A stretch of DNA of 64,000 bases from Camelus dromedarius (GCF_036321535.1 NC_087444.1:44082001-44146000), one strand, 5' to 3'. Numbered from the stretch's first letter, positions 614 through 36,334 are shown. A program made the numbers and translations. Notes: generated from the sequence alone by a model not told the origin.

Positions 614-3260
614 ACCCTTCCACCTCTGTCTTCACAGCCATGAAGCTGCCCTCCAAGCAGGAGCCTAGAGCCCCTGAGCCCAGGCCTAGGGCAGCCAGGC
701 CAGCCCTGCCTCACAACCCTGCCCTCCCCATCCAGCTGCAGTGGCAGCCTGGGCACCCAGACCCCAACCCCAACCCCACCCCAACCCTCTGGCTGCAGTA
801 CTACCCAAGACTTCCCATCACCCCTTCCCCTGAGAGCAGATTGGGACCTGCTGGCCTGGCATTCAGGCCACAAAAATGACCCTTGCCAGATCTCCAGTGC
901 CATCACTGCCCCACCCCCCCACCCCTGTTCTCATCATTCCCAAAACTTTTCCCACGTAGTGTCCTCTGCCAGGAATGCTACCTTCCCCCACCCCAATCTC
1001 CATACACGCAAGCCAAACCCGCCTCCCCTCACCACCAGCCTCCATGGCCAGCCTCTATGCCCTCTGCAGAGCCTCTGGGTCCTCCCAGTGGGAGAGTTCT
1101 CTCCTCCTCTTCTAGCAAGCTTATCTCACTCCCCAGCCTCAGATCCTAACTGTCTTGTTTGTTTGTGTCCCTGACCAGATGAGGATGTCCCAGCCATGCT
1201 GACTGGGCCCTGCCCAGTGGCCCAGGGAACAGAAGTGGCAACAACAGTGCAGGCTGCCTAGCATAGCCTCCCCATCCCAGACCACACCTGGAGTGGTGTC
1301 CTTCATGACCTAACACTCTCAGAGCCGAGCCCCAGGACCACGGGAGGCAGGACAGCTATGATCACCCCCATATGCCCACTTAGTACGTGGGCCCAGAGGG
1401 AGAGGCAAGGCAAGGTGGCCATGATGATGCTATGACTGAGGTCCCTGGGGCCCCTGCAGCAAAGGGGGGTCAGGTCTGGCCCCAAGAGCTAGTCCCATCC
1501 CTGGACATGGGCAGTGAAGACCCCATGGGACCTCTGGCAGCCAGCAGTTCTCACTGACTGGAGACGCTTCTTCCTGCTCAGTCTCCAACCCCAAGGAGTC
1601 AGTCCTGAGGAAATCAGCGGCAGTGGGCAGGGCCTTGGTTCTGGGTCTGGACCACCCATGAGTTCTAAAACACCTTATTTGTCTCATTCGCTGCCATGTC
1701 CACCATCCCTAGAACAGTACCAGGCACACCATAGGTGCTGGATAATTATTTATAAGAATAACGTATTTGGCCCTCTATAGCCACAGAGGCTATTCCTCCC
1801 CACGCTACCTAGCTGAGGGCAGAGCAGTTCCAGGCAGGGTGGGAGTGGGGTAGGTAGAGGGGGGCCCTGCCTCAGTTCATGCTCCCCAACCCTCTCAGTC
1901 AAAAAAAAAAACACCAGCCTCCTCCCATGGGGCCATGGGAGACCCCAACTCAGTCCCACAGGAAGGAGGCTGGTTGGGGAGGCAGGGAGGACAAGAACCA
2001 GCAGTTGCCCCAGGTGGGAACTGGCGGTGGGGAGGCCCTATCTGTGCAAGGCAGATGGGGGCCCGGGGTCTGGCAGTTGGCAAGCAGCGAGTCCTCAGCC
2101 TCTGCTTCCCCATCTACTGCCACTGGTTCCCAGGGTGTTCTCTCTAATCCCAGGTCCTCCATGCTCAGACCCTACTTCCAGGACCATCTCCTCCCAAAGG
2201 TGGCCTGGGTGATGAAGAGCCAGACTGTCCCCAGCTCACTGGGAGCCCTGAACGCAGCCCCCAGGTAGCTGCAGGTGAGGGCTGCAAGAGCCCTGTGCCT
2301 AGTCCCCTGCGGCGCCCTCTCCTCCCTGGGGCCAGATCCTGGCTTTCTATCCCCAGACTTGTTCTGTGACCTTGGGGATAAGCCCCCTTCCTCTCACAAC
2401 TTTGGTTCTCCTATCTGTACATGGGAGCAGGAGAGGATGGTTATCTCACTACCCAGAGAGCAGACCCCAGTTTGCTGGGCCCAGTGACTCTATGACTCTG
2501 AGCCTCAGTTTCCCTGGCTAGTGGCTCTGACAAGTTTCATCCTCTGGGGCCCCATCCCCTTCCCAGGCATCTCCCTGTCCATCCACCCCCAACTCTAGAG
2601 ACCCCGCACAGCACTGCTCATGTGGGCTAGCTCCGAACCAGTTACCAAGACTTCAGTTCTCCGGTCTACCACCGCCCCACCCTCTGCCGCACACACCCCC
2701 ATCCCTCCTCCCTCCTGCTCTCATGCCCTCCATCTGGTACCTGGTGACAGTTAGAAGGTCCCGCATGGGGCCAGGCAGCTGAATTGCCTTTCAAGATCCA
2801 CCGCCGAGGCTTAACCTGCCAGCTGTGGTCCCACTGCTGAGGGAGCGCCTGTGGTGTGGAGGCTCCCAGCCCCTCTCCTGCAGCAGGGCAAGGCAGGCAG
2901 CCAGTGTGGAGCCGGGGGAGGTGCCTGAGTGTGTTTTGGTGGGGGGGACACCCCCCTCTGCCCCAGCTGGGCTCCTCCCTCCTCCTAGCTCTGCTGGGGA
3001 TGACGGGACCATACGTGAGTCACGGATTTCTCAGAGGGAGGCTGGGAGGGGGCAGGGCTGAGAGAGCTGAGGCAGGGATACTGGGGGGGATGCCCATGAC
3101 TCAGCGCTGGGCAAGGGGGCACTTCAGCCTCACCCCACATCCAGGCAGACAGGTGCCAAGCTTCATGGATGGATCCTGGTTGGAGATATCTCTGCCTCCT
3201 CGCCTTCCATCTGGCGCTTCCCTAGAGCTGTTCTCCCCAAAGTTCCCGAGAGAGGCCAGG

Positions 3261-3274
3261 GTTGCTATGGCAAC
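3261..3274. promoter_or_regulatory. RFX X-box GTTGCTATGGCAAC, with AP-1 sites at 3016-3022 and 3097-3103
   Basis: Canonical X-box match (GTTNCCATGGNAAC-type); consensus TGA(C/G)TCA sites nearby. Confidence 0.55.
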
Positions 3275-6200
3275 AGGCCGCCCAGATGCTGCCCCCACCC
3301 CCCAGACCCAGGCGACAACTGCCCCTTCCTGAAGGAAAGTCCAGCCTCCTTGGCAGCAGGCAGGAGTCGGCGCTGACAGGCAGAGCGGAAGGCAAGCTGG
3401 GGAAGGGAGGTGTCAAGCAGCCTGGCATGTGGCCAGCCAGGCCATGCACTACTGGCCACCTGACCTTGACTCCTCCCTGAGCCTCATTTAGTCCTCCCAG
3501 CAAAGGGACTCATCTCAATGCTCCCCAAGCACTCATGGTTTCAACATTCCAAGACTCAAGTTCTGGATTCTGAGACCCCCTACGGGTGTCTGGAAATGAC
3601 CTGCCAGTCCAAACCTAGCAGACGTGTGACCTTCTGCCAAAGGGGAAACTGAGGCCCAGGTAAGAAGCCACTGCTGGTGGTTCCAAAAGCTCAAAAAGAG
3701 AAATTTTGAAATAGGCTGACGCCCCTACCCCATTTTCTGGCCACTGGTGTCTATCAGCAGTCCCCTCCCACTGCTAAGGTTCATGGCCACCTTGAGAGTC
3801 AGGAAGCTTCAGATGGCCCAACAGCCTGCCCTGTGGGGTGGGGACTCCCCATCCTCCCTCCAAGGTGAACAAATGATTCCCAAATCACAGATGCTATAAG
3901 GATTTCACAACCTAATTAGGGTAAGTGATGTCGGCAATAATAACAACAGTAATAATAATAATGATTACATTTACTGATCATTTACTACATTCCAGACTCT
4001 TCCCTGGTGCCATTGCTGTTGCACCACAGGAAAATGTGTTGCTCAGAACAGTGCCTGGCACTTAATATGCTTTCAGTCAACATTTGCAGTGAATGTGGTG
4101 ATAAAGAAGAAAGAGAAATGAAGCCCAGAAAAGAGAATTAACTTGCCCAAGGTCACACAGCTGGGAAGGGGCAGAGTTGGGACAGGAGCCCAGGTGGTCT
4201 GGCTCCACAGCTGGCTCTCCTAACCATTCATGAATCCAGCCTTCCCAGGCCTCTGGAGATGGTTCTGGACACAGTGGATGCTCAGGGCACTGAGGTCTGT
4301 TCTCTCTCACAGGGATCTGCATTCTAGAATAGTGGCATGGAAAAGTCACCTAATACAGCATCAATGGAAGCTCTTTAAGGCAGCCTAGGAGGCGAGGGGT
4401 CACTGCAAGTGAAGTCCACCCCTCACCTGCCTGCATAAATCAAGCTTCAGGGAGGAGGAAGGTCAATAAAGCTATACACTGGGGTGCAGGGAGGCCCCCC
4501 AGGCCAGAGCTTTCTCCAGGCAGTCAGCCTGCCATCCAGACTGTGGCCAGTGCCTGGAGCAGGTGGGCTCTGTGGCCACTGGGTCCATGTCTAGTCCACT
4601 GCTCCCTCCCAGGGTCACAGGGGTTATTACCTCATTGATGGGGCAGGAGGGGCTGGCCCATGCTAGAGGCCAAGAAACGAGAGAGCAGAAGTAAGCTTTC
4701 CAAAAAAGGATGGGGAGTCCCTTACATGCCATGTCTTTGGGAAAGCTGCCACCTCCAAGCCTCGGTTTCCCCAAGGTCTGTCCTTCAGGGCAAGGCCAGC
4801 TGGTCACTGGGGCAGCCTCAGCTGTTCCCCAGGGTCCAGGCCAGCTGGACAGCAGTCACTCACCTGACACACACACCACAGAGGGTGCTGGCCAGCAAGG
4901 CACGGGTGGAGGGTCGGCAGCACCACTCTCTCTGCAGTTGGCAGGGGCTCTCCGGGCTGGATGTCCGAGCAAGGAACGCAGAAGCCCAGAACCAGCTGCC
5001 ACTCTGGCCACATACGAAAGGCCTATGGGGTGGCCCAGCCAGGGCAGGAGGTGGCCCGCCAAGCTCTGCCTGCACTCTCATCAGGTTTCTCAGAGACCTA
5101 CTATGTGCTGGGCACTGAGCCAGGTGCCAGGGGGTGGAGAGATCAGCCCGGCTCACATCATGGTGACCCTGGGGAGTCAGTTATTGGCACCATAAAGCCC
5201 CCAGAGGGCTCTGGGAGTCAGAGGAGAGAAACCAAATAAATTATTATTAGTCACAACACTACCTATTGTTAGTACCAACAGGACTGATTATAGCAGCTGA
5301 GTCCATAGGGTTCACTGTGTAAGACGCTCTGCTCTATGTGGGTCCTTCATATTTCATCCTCTCGAACCCGTGTCCCACTCGCATGTCAGAGACATGAAGT
5401 AGCTCAGCCAAGGCCATACAGCTGGTCTGTGGCTGGGCCTCCAGACGTGTGCTGCAAAGGAGACAGAGATGGGGCCACAAGGGAGGTGAGAGGGCACGTA
5501 GTTCCCAGGACACGAGGGAAGACGGGACATCCATGGTACACACAGTGACAGAGGCTTGGGCGAGTGCAAGGACACACTGGGGCTTCTTCCCAGAGGCCTC
5601 ACCCTTCTCCATCTCTAACCCTTCACCAGGGCAGCCTTGCAAACAGTGAAGAGCTGTGCCCACCTGCGGGAAGAGTCACGGGCAAACACTGCCTGCATGG
5701 TGGTGGGTTTTTATTGACAAGAACAGTTCAGGTCCAGGTTTCTCCCCTTGCAAGCTGAGTGGCCTCATAAATCATCGAGCACCACGCCTGGCACACAGTA
5801 GGTGCTCAACAAATGTTGGCCAACATCAGATACCAAAGGCCCAGCACTCAACAGTTTATAAAGGCCTTTCATGTCCATTGTCTCTATAAACAGTGATGAT
5901 TGTTCCTATTTAACAGAGATGGAAACTGAGGCTCAGAGCACTTTTCCAAAGCCTCTCAGCACATCAGTAGCAGAGCCAGGACTCGAATCCAAGTCCTGTG
6001 ACCTGGCCCACATGTTTTGTGGCCCGTGCTCCACGCCACCTCCCTGTTCATTCCCGTGGGAAAGCCTCCTGGCCAAAGGAGTGGGGGCAGCTGCAGTCCC
6101 ATGATAACGCCAACTCCCGTCACAGCCACCCCAGCGCCTGGGGGGATGGCATTGCCCATGTGACTCAGCCGCCCTCACAAAGGGAACTGTGTGCCTTAGG

Positions 6201-17500: not shown

Positions 17501-20500
17501 GCTCTTGCCTCCCCTCAGCCCTGTCCCAAACCCCAGCTGACCTATAGGCTCAGATGACGGACAGGTCTGGAAAGTGGGTTTAAGTCCTGAACATCTTCTC
17601 TGAGGAACCTGAGAACCTGGGCTTCTGACCAGGGAGGGGCTCCTGAGGAAAGGATGCTCCCATGACAAGCTGGGTTCACAGGGCTGCCTAACCCTAACTT
17701 CCAAGAGCTGGGAACAGTCCAAATGCCCAGCACCAGGAAATCGCTCAGAAAGCACAGCCCAGCTCTGCACCCCTGCGGTGACCAATCATCTCTATTTGCC
17801 CAGGACTGTCTGTTTTAGTTCTGGGTCCCAGGAAATGCCTCAGTCCCTGACAAACTGGACAGTTGGCCATCCCCACTCATTCATATGGTAATGACAAAAA
17901 AAATGCTTATAAATACTAAATTCAGTGAAAATAAGAAGAAAACAAAGGTGGCATCTTCACCCGTCCCAGGGACCTGTTTCTCTGCTCTGAGACAGGGCTG
18001 GTACCGAGGGACCACTCAGAAACTGCAGAGTCAGTGGTGGCAAATTTGTGTCTCTGGGTCCAGCTTACGAGTAAGTGTGGGACACTGGAGCCGGTTCAAT
18101 TTCAGCTCTACCACACACTTGCTGTGTGACCTTGGGGAGGTGACCCAGCAGCTCTGTGCCTCAGTGTCCCCATCTGTAACCTGTTCCTACCCTCTTGGGT
18201 GGTTGTGTAGCTTCAGTGAGATCAATCACAGAAAGCACCGTGCTGGGCGTGCTGCAAGCACTTGAGCGATGCTGTTAGGAAGCAAAGTCAGTTGGAAGGA
18301 TTGTGGGTGTTCTTTTCCATTTTAGAATTATTTCCATTATGGCTGCTCTAAAGTTGTTTGCACAATACAATCAAAGCAAAACAAAAAGCATACATATCTG
18401 CGGACATGGATGTATATAAATAGAGCCTGAAACCAAATGTTACACTGGTTGTGGGGTGGGGAGTGAGGGGCTGCTCCCCGGATGCGGTGGCTGGCCCCAA
18501 AGCTTGCCATTAGAACAGCTGACAGGAGATGCAGCTGAGGCCTCGCTGAGGTTACCCCAAACCATGTCAGAGCTAAAACCTGAGCAGGCAGCTCCAGTTG
18601 AGGAAAGAGGAGGCAGGCAGTCTCCTGAGTCAGAGAGGGTGTCTTTTGTTTCCGGGGAAGCCCAGCACAGGCACGACTCAGCCCCACCCCCACAGCTGAC
18701 ACAGATTCCATTCCCCTCAGCCCTCACCTTGTCTTGCAGACAGCAACTTGGGACTGCCATGTCCCCACAGGTAGGAAGGTCTGCTCCTGTACACAGAAGG
18801 GGCAGCCACGCTCTCCCAATCTGCTTTTTCATTTGTCTCTGAACTCCTAACCTAGTATGAAGTATGTCTTGTGCAGGGTGGGCAGAGGGAGCAGTACCTA
18901 GGGTACAAAAAGGTGCCAATAACCCTGCACCTCACTCTAACCCGCCTGGGACTCTGATGCAGACTCTGTTATTATCTCATCTCAAAGTCAAAACAAAACA
19001 AACCACAAGGCTCAGAGAGCAGAATGTTACTTGCCCTGGAAAGTAGCAAAGCCAAGATGTGTAGCCAGACCTACCAGGCTGCCGTGCCCACTGGCTTAAC
19101 GACTGAGCCATCCTCTCCCTGGGCACATGACACCTGGCTGAAGCCCAGGTGACTGGCATGGCAGGCAGCATGCTGAAGCTGAGTTTGTAGGCTGGAGCTG
19201 GGCTCTCAACTCTGTCCAGGCTCACCAGGTGACCTTGGTCAAGTCCCTTCCTGTCTCTGTGCTTCAGTCTCATTGTCTGGGGAAGCTGATGGCTGAACTG
19301 GAGCAGGAGTTACAAACCACAGCGCCCCCCCACCCCCCGCCCAGGGCCAAACAGGGCAAGCTCATGAGAACAGGAGGGAAGTCAGGGGTGGGGGGAAGAC
19401 CATAGGTAGTGGAGAAGCCTGGGTTGAACTAGAGAGTACGGGCCATCTTGGGGAGTGCTGCCCAGCACCAGCCAAATGTCACTTGAAGGGATTTGGGCCC
19501 AGTGTGGCCTGATCCTTCAGTTTTTTGAGAAGAGTCAGAAATCTGATTTTTATATGACAATCTAAATTGTTAACAGTTAAGATTTAATTCAAATAGATTT
19601 AAAGCCCTTTGAGAGTCAAAGCCTATATAGAGCCAGACACTGCCCATTGGTCTCCAGCTGACAACCCCCGGACTCCATGTCAGACCCTTTGGTGTTCCCC
19701 AATATCCACTGGCCCCCTTCTAATGGAATAGAACCTCATGTTTTTAGCTGGGTTCATAGCTTCCCAGAATAAAGACATCATTTCCCAGTTTCCCTTGCAG
19801 CTAAGTGTGGCTACACAAGTGCATCTATCTGCCCAATAGGGAGATCACAGAAGCTAACATCTATATGGGTCATGTGCTGTTGTAAACACATTACTATGGC
19901 AACACCTTAAGGCTCACAGTAGCCCCACAGCAGATACTATCTTATCCACTTTTTCTAGATGAGGAAAATGAGGCAGATGCTCAAGTTCACACAACCAGAG
20001 AGGAACAAGGCCAGGATTCTCCCCCAGGCAATCAGCCTTCCTATCTCGGAGGGTCCTGTCCCTCCAAAGGAGTGTGGGCTTGGCAGTAGAAGGAATAGAG
20101 TTCCAGACAAGGCCACATGTCCTCTGGTCCCCAGCACAGAATCTGGCCTGGCCAAGAGGCCCCCTCCCCAGTGAGGGGGCAGGAGAGCACCGTGGATAAG
20201 AGCCCAGACTCTGGAGCCCCCACGATAAGCAGTCACTCCTGTGTAAGCCTCCAGTGCCTCAGTGTCCTCTGTCTCTAAAGTGGGCACATCAGGAGCTCAT
20301 GCCTCGCAGGCATAAAGGTGCATGTAAAGCACTAAGCCCGGGGCCTGGCAGAGGCTGAGGGCTGGAAGGTTCAGGACTGTTCTAGCCCAGCTGACCCACC
20401 AGGAAACCAGGGAGAGTTTGAGTCTTGAGGGGCCTGTAGGGATGTCTCAGCCCACTTGTGTCCAGGCAGGCACCCGCAAGGGCTCAGAAAGCGTGTGTCC

Positions 20501-33825: not shown

Positions 33826-34435
33826 GTCACCATTTACAATACATCAAAATATATCAAGTACGTGGAAATAAATCTTAGCAGAAATATGCAAAATTCAGAT
33901 AAAATTCTAAAACTTAGTTGGGACATACAGAAATAGTCTAGAGCACTCACCAACAGTCCCATCCATAGGAGGCTGCCTGATTTACAACAGAGGTGGTGTT
34001 TCTGAGCATTGAGGAAAGACCTGACTTTTCAATACATGGTGCTCAGATGGTTGGATATCCATGTGAGAAAAAAACAAAACAAAGCAAAATTCGACTCTAG
34101 CACATACCAGTCACGAAAATCAACTGCAGGTAAATTAAAGACCTGACGACGAAAAGCTCCAAAACTTCTGGGCAATGATATAGAAAGATGTCTTTCTGAC
34201 TTGTATCAAGGATGGATTTTTTGAACACAAAAGCACTAACCATAAAGTAGATGTTTAATACTTTATGAACTCAATTAAAACATACTGAACTGAAAATTTT
34301 CTATTCATCAAAAGACTACAGTGGAAAAAAGTGAACACACAAATCACAGAGTAGAATATAACTGCAATAGCATAAATGGCAAAGGAGTTGTATCCAGAAT
34401 ATATAAATATCTCCTACAAATCAATAAGAAAAAGA

Positions 34436-34810
34436 GGAGGAGACGCCAGGCGGCCGAAAGCGGCCCAAGCACGCCCTCCGCCCCCGGGACTCCGGCACCA
34501 AGGCGAGGCCGGGCTGACGCGGGCGGCCTTTTCCTCGCCAGAATCTCGACGCCGTCCTCCCCCAGCCCAGCCAGGACCGCGTCCGCCTGTACCTGTCGGC
34601 AAGAGAACCGCTGCTTCTCCTCAGGCCCCTCCTCATCCTCCATCATCATCATCACAGCAAGCGGTCCCTGGGAGGCGCTCGAGGACACAAAGAGGCTTCG
34701 GCCGGGAAGGCCCAGTCGGATTTTCCCGCCACGGCGCCGGGCGACGGGCCGCGTGGGGGCCCAAAGCGCGAAGCTGCCGGCTGCCGCCTCGCGCGCGCGA
34801 CCTCGGTAGG
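34436..34810 (-). pseudogene. CENPS: Inserted fragment of CENPS/APITD1: 5' UTR, coding exon 1 (34593..34643/34652) and about 155 nt of intron 1
   Basis: MEDEEGPEEKQRFSCRQ|gtacag versus recalled human MEEEAETEEQQRFSYQQ| (17 codons, phase-0 donor); E2F site GGCGGGAAA at 34730..34722; about 45 CpGs in 370 bp. Confidence 0.85.
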
Positions 34811-36334
34811 CCTTGCAAAATCCAATGTAGGTTTTTATAATTCCATCACCATAGTGTCACAAAGTCAGACCACGGATAAATGCTTGATTTCTATCCCACT
34901 CAGTGAATAAATTGCACACCCCATTAACATTGATAAAGGAGTACAGTTCTGACCCTAATGTTGGCTGATTTTCCTTTATGTCAAAAATTAAGTAAAAATT
35001 AAGTAAAATGAAACAATGAAACTCAAAAATAAAGAGGAGAAGTGAGGCTGAGACAAGGGCTTGGCTGTCTAGAAGATGATGCCAGAGGCGGAGTGAGGGG
35101 TGGCGAGAGTGAGACAGGGCAGGCAGACACCCCAATATAAGGGTGTTGTCAAGGTTGGTGCTGTAGACAGGGGCCCTCCAGGACCTCTGAGGAGCTCCAG
35201 AGCTGTTTCCATGAAGGTCAGGAGGTGGAGCACCTGCCCATCAGCTATTATGCCCCCATTCCAAGTTTGTCCCCCACACAGCAGCTGAAATCAGATTGAC
35301 CCTGGCACCAGAGACATATGCTACAAACAACCCAACGGGAAAAAGGCAAAAGATTTAAATAGACACTTTAAAAAAAAAAAGGCAGGATGAGGGAATCCAA
35401 CCAGCCAACCAGCCAATAAATATACGAAGAGATTCTGTATCTCATTAAATTGCCTTGGAAATACAATAACAATGAGATGCCACTACACCAAACAGGATGC
35501 CAATAATTAGCAATGCCAAGTGTGGCACCAGAGAGCAAGGGGAACGCTCAGCCAAGCAGAGGGGGACTGTAAATTTGTTCAGCCACTTCAGAAGACTGGC
35601 ATCATCTGGTGAAGTTGAAGATACCTATGACCTGTAGCCCAGAAATCCCACTCCCAGACATACACCTTTGAGAAACACGTATATATTTGCACCTCTACTT
35701 ACATACGAGAATGCTCATCGGAGTATTCCTTACAATAGCCCCAACCTGCAAACATCCGAAACATCCATCAACAGGAGAATGGGTTCACAGCTTGTCGTGT
35801 GGTCACGTACTGGATAGCATACAGCAGTGAACTTGAATAAACTGTACCTACACGACAACACAGATGAATCCTACAAACCTAATGATAAGTTGAAGAAACA
35901 TGGATTTTGCTTATATAAATTTCCAACAGGAAAAACCAAAACGAAGTTGTTCAGAGATACAGAAACAGGTGGTAAAATTATCAATACAAGTGAGGAAGTG
36001 AAGCCTCTAAATGTCAAGATGTTTCCCTCTCCGGTGTGATGGAGAAAGGAGGCTGGGGGGTTCTGGGTGGAGAGAGGGGGTTACATTATCGCCAGGGGAT
36101 TTGCTTTATAATTTTTGTTAAAATTGTGTGTATAGCCAGTAAATTCTCTATAGTTCACCATTTTCAATGTTTAAAAATAAAGAATTACATCAATAAAACT
36201 GATACACACACACACCACCTGTTCCCCCTTCGTGGGTTCTCTACTCCTGTTACAGAGAGGCCACCCAACAACCCAGGACCCCAAGTATCAGCCTTGATAA
36301 CTCAGTGAATGTGGGATAGACAGAGGATAGACAG

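Follow-up and report, generated by a model that had tools for sequence, protein, structure and literature searches.

A copy of the CENPS CpG-island promoter inside a LINE-1 of Camelus dromedarius, probably retroposed from an antisense RNA

Introduction

The stretch of DNA analysed here (64,000 nucleotides of the Camelus dromedarius genome, GCF_036321535.1 NC_087444.1:44082001-44146000, hereafter "the window") contains an old long interspersed element of the type LINE-1 (L1) interrupted by foreign sequence. Between two copies of the 9-mer AAAGAGGAG, the interval 34440-35030 is, from its alignment to the parental gene, one uninverted copy of the promoter, exon 1 and intron 1 start of CENPS. A first-pass annotation of the window had explained this interval by twin priming of a CENPS transcript. 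We propose instead, with a probability of roughly 0.75, that an unspliced, polyadenylated RNA antisense to CENPS was the template of this copy and of two dispersed relatives, all of them 5'-truncated retrocopies made by LINE-1.

The hallmarks of LINE-1-mediated retrocopies have been described (PMC2912911, PMC2837659); target-primed reverse transcription by LINE-1 has as its signature a 3' end that stays fixed and carries an A tail, 5' ends that are ragged, and an A-first duplication at a T-rich site (PMC2837659, PMC2912911). In twin priming, two fragments of a single RNA lie inverted to each other between the duplications, and there is an internal deletion (PMC2837659). Promoters can also travel through RNA: core promoters have been copied together with retrogenes via an upstream transcription start (Okamura and Nakai 2008, PMC2386082), and PPP1R26P1, a truncated retrocopy in intron 2 of RB1, brought with it a CpG island that is now an alternative promoter (PMC3839921).

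Results

The Pfam CENP-S model, searched against the genome from which the window comes, led to the parental locus. The true CENPS gene lies on the minus strand of contig C14, with CENP-S domain exons at C14:64196757-64196882 and C14:64192279-64192353. Its exon 1 occupies C14:64200173-64200226 (positions 4173-4226 of the stretch labelled L014; the labels L015, L016, L010 and L009 stand likewise for stretches of contigs C31, C2, C5 and C10), and exon 2, which reads RLKAAVHYTVGC..., sits 3.3 kb beyond it on the same strand, past an intron 1 of about that length. The segment C14:64200019-64200734, to which the window copy corresponds, spans the start of intron 1, exon 1, the CpG-island promoter and then an AT-rich, repeat-derived upstream stretch, and ends 508 bp upstream of the CENPS ATG.

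Two alignment blocks, unchanged in strand and order, relate the window to this locus: 34449-34778 pairs with L014 4031-4352 at 86% identity, and 34797-35026 with L014 4516-4734 at 87% identity. The minus strand of the GC-rich piece has four ATG codons followed by EDEEGPEEKQRFSCRQ and a GTACAG splice donor. The first-pass annotation had correctly recognized a reversed CENPS piece here; 34440-34811 is made up of exon 1, 153 nt of intron 1 and the 5' region. It had further assigned 34812-35030 to a more distal part of the CENPS transcript, taken the junction between both pieces (34811/34812) as an inversion point and predicted a CTCCTCTTT-like microhomology in the parental intron past the breakpoint. 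The parental alignment contradicts all three proposals: the AT-rich part lies upstream of the CENPS start, there is no such microhomology at that place, and the junction is a 155-bp internal deletion between colinear flanks. The deleted segment persists in the parent as well as in both further copies (C31 and C2), and is missing solely from the window copy, where a 2-nt GC microhomology is found at the junction. The features of the insertion are collected in Table 1.

Table 1. Features of the CENPS-derived insertion and its host LINE-1 (positions counted in the window)
Feature	Position	Strand	Basis or remark
Host LINE-1, left part (3' region of open reading frame 2, ORF2), ending ...AATAAGAAAAAG	34300..34436	+	Matches many dispersed L1 copies in the same genome
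Left target-site duplication, AAAGAGGAG	34431..34439	+	Exact match; abuts the start of parental homology
Probable retrocopy, whole	34440..35030	+ (sense of the putative RNA, antisense to CENPS)	Colinear with C14:64200019-64200734 (+), 86-87% identity, except for a 155-bp internal deletion
CENPS intron 1, first 153 nt	34440..34592	-	Parent alignment; donor GTACAG at 34592-34587
CENPS exon 1, coding part, 20 codons	34593..34652	-	Sequence read and alignment
CENPS 5' region, part of the CpG-island promoter	34653..34811	-	
Internal deletion junction	34811..34812	.	155 bp of the parent (L014 4363-4517) missing
AT-rich region upstream of the CENPS promoter, derived from an old interspersed repeat	34812..35026	+	87% identity to the parent; C5 and C10 paralogues
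AATAAA hexamer (AACAAA in today's parent)	34906..34911	+	
11-bp tandem duplication, AAAAATTAAGT twice	34983..35004	+	Unique to the window copy
Variant poly(A) signal AGTAAA; parental homology ends 19 nt further on	35002..35007	+	Sequence read
AAAT, sole non-parental bases at the 3' end; possible poly(A) tail remnant	35027..35030	+	Parent reads CGTC; C31 copy reads AAT, then A11
Right target-site duplication, AAAGAGGAG	35031..35039	+	Exact match; chance placement about 5e-4
Unique 282-bp filler inside the L1	35040..35321	.	Genome search: self-match alone
Host LINE-1, right part, resuming at ACAAACAACCC	35322..35600	+	Colinear with other L1 copies

As a side observation on exon 1, a triplet has expanded at 34641-34652, where four consecutive ATG (CAT four times on the plus strand) are found versus two in the parent.

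The 219-bp block at the 3' end of the window copy (34812-35030) is AT-rich and terminates in an A-rich run, as had been described before; its reading as a poly(A) tail does not hold, given that parental homology runs to ...ACTCAA (35026) and everything except the last 4 nt is templated by the parent. The 11-bp tandem duplication inflates the A-rich look of this end, and has also produced a second AGTAAA at 34991-34996. In the parent, AGTAAA is located at L014 4710-4715, homology ends at L014 4734 and a T-rich stretch lies just downstream. The end of the copied region thus has what would be expected of a transcript end, for which a poly(A) signal should lie 10-30 nt upstream: AGTAAA stands 19 nt before it in both parent and window copy, and two independent copies share it. 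Paralogues of the AT-rich block are found at L010 about 1440-1690 and L009 about 1400-1650, and extend past both ends of the block, showing that the AT-rich stretch upstream of the CENPS promoter, poly(A) signals included, derives from an old interspersed repeat. These C5 and C10 matches were considered as extra retrocopies and rejected: they have no GC-rich part and align beyond both ends, as members of the old repeat family.

Exact copies of AAAGAGGAG stand at both ends of the parental CENPS homology, in agreement with the first-pass annotation. A third, unrelated copy occurs in the window at 18604, and three copies in 64 kb are not unusual, since this count was reached in 21 of 100 shuffles. 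It is the placement of the repeat at the homology boundaries, not its copy number, that makes it meaningful. Between the left copy and the first base of parental homology (about 34440-34442) there are 0-2 nt, and between the last such base and the right copy there are 4 nt; in an exhaustive test of every window position, a shared 9-mer equally close to two anchors 592 bp apart was found at 35 of 63,100 positions (about 5e-4). The repeat is a genuine target-site duplication, and its 9 bp fall within the roughly 7-20 bp anticipated at the exact ends of a target-primed retrocopy. It begins with AAA, as expected if a T-rich nick primes on an A tail; the bottom strand at the nick site reads 5'-CTCCTCTTT/TTCTT-3', which is T-rich and, compared with a motif of about TTTT/A, has T instead of A as the base after the nick.

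Two further copies of the region were found in the same genome. That on C31 covers L015 4046-5345 (C31:22034046-22035345), 1.3 kb equivalent to parental L014 3356-4734; that on C2 covers L016 5709-5100 (C2:82443100-82443709, reverse strand), equivalent to L014 4064-4651. In both, the two blocks keep the strand and order of the parent. Within 25 kb around each, no homology beyond the copied region joins the window, C31, C2 and C14 loci, and therefore the copies are not pieces of larger duplications. Their 5' ends vary (parental L014 3356 for C31, about 4019 for the window and about 4064 for C2), and the 3' ends of the window and C31 copies lie within 3 nt of each other (...TCAA followed by AAAT or AAT), the latter continuing into A11 and then unrelated flank. 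The C2 copy ends about 21 nt after the AATAAA equivalent to window 34906-34911, inside the ORF2 3' region of another L1, at a site about 60 bp further along the element than that of the window. The C31 copy has lost the ATG.

The 5' end of the C31 copy abuts a younger repeat of about 398 bp resembling a long terminal repeat (LTR), at L015 3649-4046 (C31:22033649-22034046). This repeat ends in ...TGTAACA and has AATAAA near its end; a first look at the genome gave 1,545 candidates, and the 40 scored were about 90% alike, so that the family appears fairly young and abundant. No parental homology was found upstream of this repeat, nor DFFA or other C14 sequence within 18.6 kb upstream of the copy. 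Because the LTR-like repeat abuts its 5' end, the C31 copy is silent on the source of the RNA.

By the criteria of Gardiner-Garden and Frommer (as cited in PMC2386082: at least 200 bp, GC > 50%, observed/expected CpG > 0.6), window 34440-34811 is a CpG island (372 bp, GC 71.5%, 46 CpGs, observed/expected 0.98), in which 28 of the 34 parental CpGs are kept. The C31 copy has an observed/expected ratio of 1.07 and keeps 23 parental CpGs; the C2 copy has a ratio of 0.63, with 8 parental CpGs kept and 10 now CA or TG. The ratio is 0.18 in the AT-rich part and 0.09 in the 282-bp filler. The window and C31 copies have thus retained full CpG-island character despite a divergence of about 11-15% from the parent. 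Their CpG sites have changed no faster than other sites, and the substitution pattern thus implies that both copies stayed unmethylated in the germline. Comparing the window, C31 and C2 copies with the flanking DNA (0.09-0.18) gives a dated and internally controlled view on whether CpG-island status travels with sequence. The C31 copy would be a second retroposed "orphan" CpG island.

Outside CpG sites, the window, C31 and C2 copies stand at Kimura two-parameter distances (K2P) of about 0.10-0.13, 0.12-0.17 and 0.14-0.23 from the parent, with 16, 29 and 38 private changes, respectively, and 15 in the parent. If neutral change in mammals is assumed to proceed at about 2.2e-9 per site and year, the age of the window copy would come to very roughly 25-30 million years, with C31 and C2 older. 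Derived states, for example TTGCAC (T in C31, C2 and the repeat paralogues), unite the window copy with the parent; so the events took place at separate times and had the parent as their source. The differing ages of the copies point to repeated events from one locus.

Discussion

From these sequences, we infer an RNA, its strand, its start site and the action of LINE-1 proteins on it. The RNA would have the orientation of the C14 plus strand, antisense to CENPS, because the 3' end, the A-first duplication and the A11 tail seen in the C31 copy all point to the strand that is plus in the window. The proposed template is an unspliced polyadenylated RNA from the strand opposite CENPS, starting inside intron 1 or further back, which would cross exon 1 and the CpG-island promoter in antisense and end at the AGTAAA-associated poly(A) site in the AT-rich repeat-derived stretch. 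The target, an older L1, would have been nicked on its bottom strand in a T run, the TTT end priming on the A tail of the RNA, with duplication of the 9 bp of AAAGAGGAG in a LINE-1 target-primed reverse transcription. During reverse transcription or afterwards, the copy lost 155 bp internally, and 11 bp became tandemly duplicated, later or concurrently. The same RNA would have been copied at least twice more, to C31 and C2. In this sense, the suggestion of the first-pass annotation that L1 machinery retrotransposed an unspliced or intron-terminated CENPS RNA stands in part: the best mechanism remains the L1-type, target-primed insertion of an RNA that was unspliced, and it is the template that has to be replaced, as it is not CENPS sense RNA.

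A possible source of such an RNA, given here as a lead only, is read-through from DFFA (C14:64174118-64177777, plus strand), situated about 23 kb before the end of the copied region and transcribed towards CENPS in a convergent arrangement, or else a separate antisense start. In "reproductive system" RNA runs, the share of words is 0.94 before the proposed RNA end versus 0.88 after it; these shares may reflect host DNA or pervasive signal and count neither for nor against the RNA.

Several observations weigh against an antisense-RNA retrocopy. The window copy has no real poly(A) tail, AAAT alone preceding the A-first duplication, whereas A11 stands at this end of its C31 sister. Although rich in T, the nick site (CTTT/TT) differs from the classic TTTT/AA. 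The junctions of the C2 copy are too decayed to be read, and no target-site duplication was found for the C31 copy, with no copy of its 3' flank motif in 25 kb. Furthermore, where C-G-T stands in the present parent, window and C31 have A-A-(A)-T; the cause is either a later change in the parent or a similar T that happens to occur in both tails. Window and C2 also share AATAAA where the parent and C31 have AACAAA; the quartet site support is 8:7:0, and otherwise star-like.

The clearest competitor dispenses with RNA altogether: a genomic fragment of the CENPS promoter captured in double-strand-break repair, or a small duplication. The insert is indeed colinear genomic sequence that includes promoter and intron, the window copy has no clear poly(A) tail, and the 282-bp filler shows that the same L1 site took up DNA before without any duplication. 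We nonetheless regard a DNA-level copy as unlikely, given that an exact, A-first duplication of 9 bp marks the boundaries and that the same 0.6-1.4 kb region occurs as three independent copies, dispersed over three contigs and without common flanks; moreover, the ends of two of them differ by no more than 3 nt and follow AGTAAA by 19 nt, one of the two carrying A11, and random breaks would not reuse one end. The first-pass annotation had held that contiguous mapping of 34812-35030 upstream of the CENPS start would mean a DNA-level duplication. The sequence is contiguous upstream, as stated above, but the corollary does not follow, because the same colinear arrangement results from an antisense transcript, which in addition accounts for the duplication, the common 3' end and the A tail. 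The twin priming of a CENPS sense pre-mRNA that it favoured, with an inverted 5' part and a sense 3' part, retains next to no probability. The flanking duplication is present, the junction at 34811/34812 marks an internal deletion, and there is a perfect 9-nt complementarity between 34614-34622 and 35034-35042; yet parent and sister copies alike show both parts in one orientation, so neither fragments of opposite orientation nor an inverted 5' part derived from upstream are found, the AT-rich part comes from upstream of the CENPS start, and the parental breakpoint carries nothing like CTCCTCTTT. The complementarity (CTTCTCCTC and GAGGAGAAG) pairs an exon-1 antisense stretch with the right duplication, and is probably due to chance, given the GAG/CTC-rich composition.

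Two other routes would retain an RNA intermediate and change its origin. An L1 lying in CENPS intron 1, antisense to the gene, could have been read into its flank, the copies being "orphan" 3' transductions. An old L1 3' end in the same orientation as the copied region does stand directly before it, at L014 about 3000-3390, and the C31 copy begins within its last ~40 bp. This element is a 5'-truncated fragment of about 390 bp plus a separate 230-bp piece; its genomic relatives match it at just 66-90% identity and in short stretches, and therefore it is ancient. No full-length, promoter-bearing L1 fits the ~3.3-kb intron, and directly upstream there is no transcription-competent source L1, all of which makes a transduction very improbable. 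We give an equally slim chance to a copy of a copy, in which one retrocopy (for example, that on C31) kept promoter activity and spawned the others. The intact CpG island in the copies would agree with it, as would the 3' A-A-T common to window and C31 where the parent has C-G-T. On the other hand, the K2P of the GC-rich part of the window copy is 0.115 to the parent versus 0.194 and 0.134 to C31 and C2, none of the 15 parsimony sites groups window with C31, and the derived states common to window and parent (e.g., TTGCAC) are missing from C31, C2 and the repeat paralogues.

Read as retrocopies of an antisense RNA, the copies resemble the 5'-truncated class of processed pseudogenes made by LINE-1 in trans, with which they share variable 5' truncation, dispersal over different chromosomes, a 3' end placed at a poly(A) site and, in the window copy, the target-site duplication and a T-rich nick site; the difference is that the template would be unspliced, non-coding and antisense, so that a piece of intron, a reversed exon and the promoter were copied. 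The likeness to twin priming is limited to the flanking duplication and the internal deletion junction, and its defining feature, the inversion, is absent. As in the promoter retroposition of Okamura and Nakai, a CpG-island promoter would have moved to new loci via an RNA intermediate. In their cases, the carrier is the gene's own sense mRNA and part of the core promoter is copied, whereas here an antisense RNA would carry the island plus some 380 bp of upstream DNA, but without a functional gene body; in contrast to their partial promoters, the island is whole in the C31 and C2 copies, and lacks 155 bp in the window copy. PPP1R26P1 is similar in that a truncated retrocopy delivered a persisting CpG island to a new neighbourhood; the CENPS island differs in being the parental promoter itself and not an exonic island. 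No paper on CENPS/APITD1 retrocopies or on antisense RNA at the CENPS promoter was found in the literature.

The CENPS insert is thus most likely a LINE-1 retrocopy of an ordinary kind, unusual in carrying a CpG-island promoter that is still CpG-rich. Current understanding is not overturned, and the locus does not stand as an example of twin priming; what it would illustrate is a less noticed outcome of LINE-1 activity, in which an RNA running antisense across a promoter takes that promoter to new places. More tentatively, and at slightly less than even odds, an antisense and possibly read-through RNA may have retro-copied the CENPS CpG-island promoter at least three times, two of the three copies then staying at full CpG density over tens of millions of years in places unrelated to each other. 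In that case, these copies would constitute a natural experiment in which a CpG island shields itself from germline methylation by sequence alone, antisense transcription would be a route spreading complete promoters and not just gene bodies, and the window copy would be an "orphan" CpG island, moved by retroposition and available for promoter use.

Insertion site

The two halves of the host L1 stand 885 bp apart, a distance made up by the retrocopy, the duplications and the filler, and are colinear with other L1s across the insert, with an overlap of at most about 3 bp; in the dispersed L1 copies, AAAAAG runs directly into ACAAACAACCC-like sequence, uninterrupted. A scan of 34300-35450 against Rfam returned two sub-threshold small nucleolar RNA hits, attributable to chance. 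For the filler (35040-35321), no target-site duplication, tail, telling ORF, Rfam match or other match in the genome was found. The duplicated 9-mer spans the junction between L1 and filler, being composed of L1 AAAG and the filler start AGGAG, and AGGAG follows AAAAAG in none of the 10 L1 copies displayed (of 14 fetched). Because the duplication joins both sequences in this way, the filler was most likely already in the L1 when the retrocopy arrived, and it looks like an older insertion.

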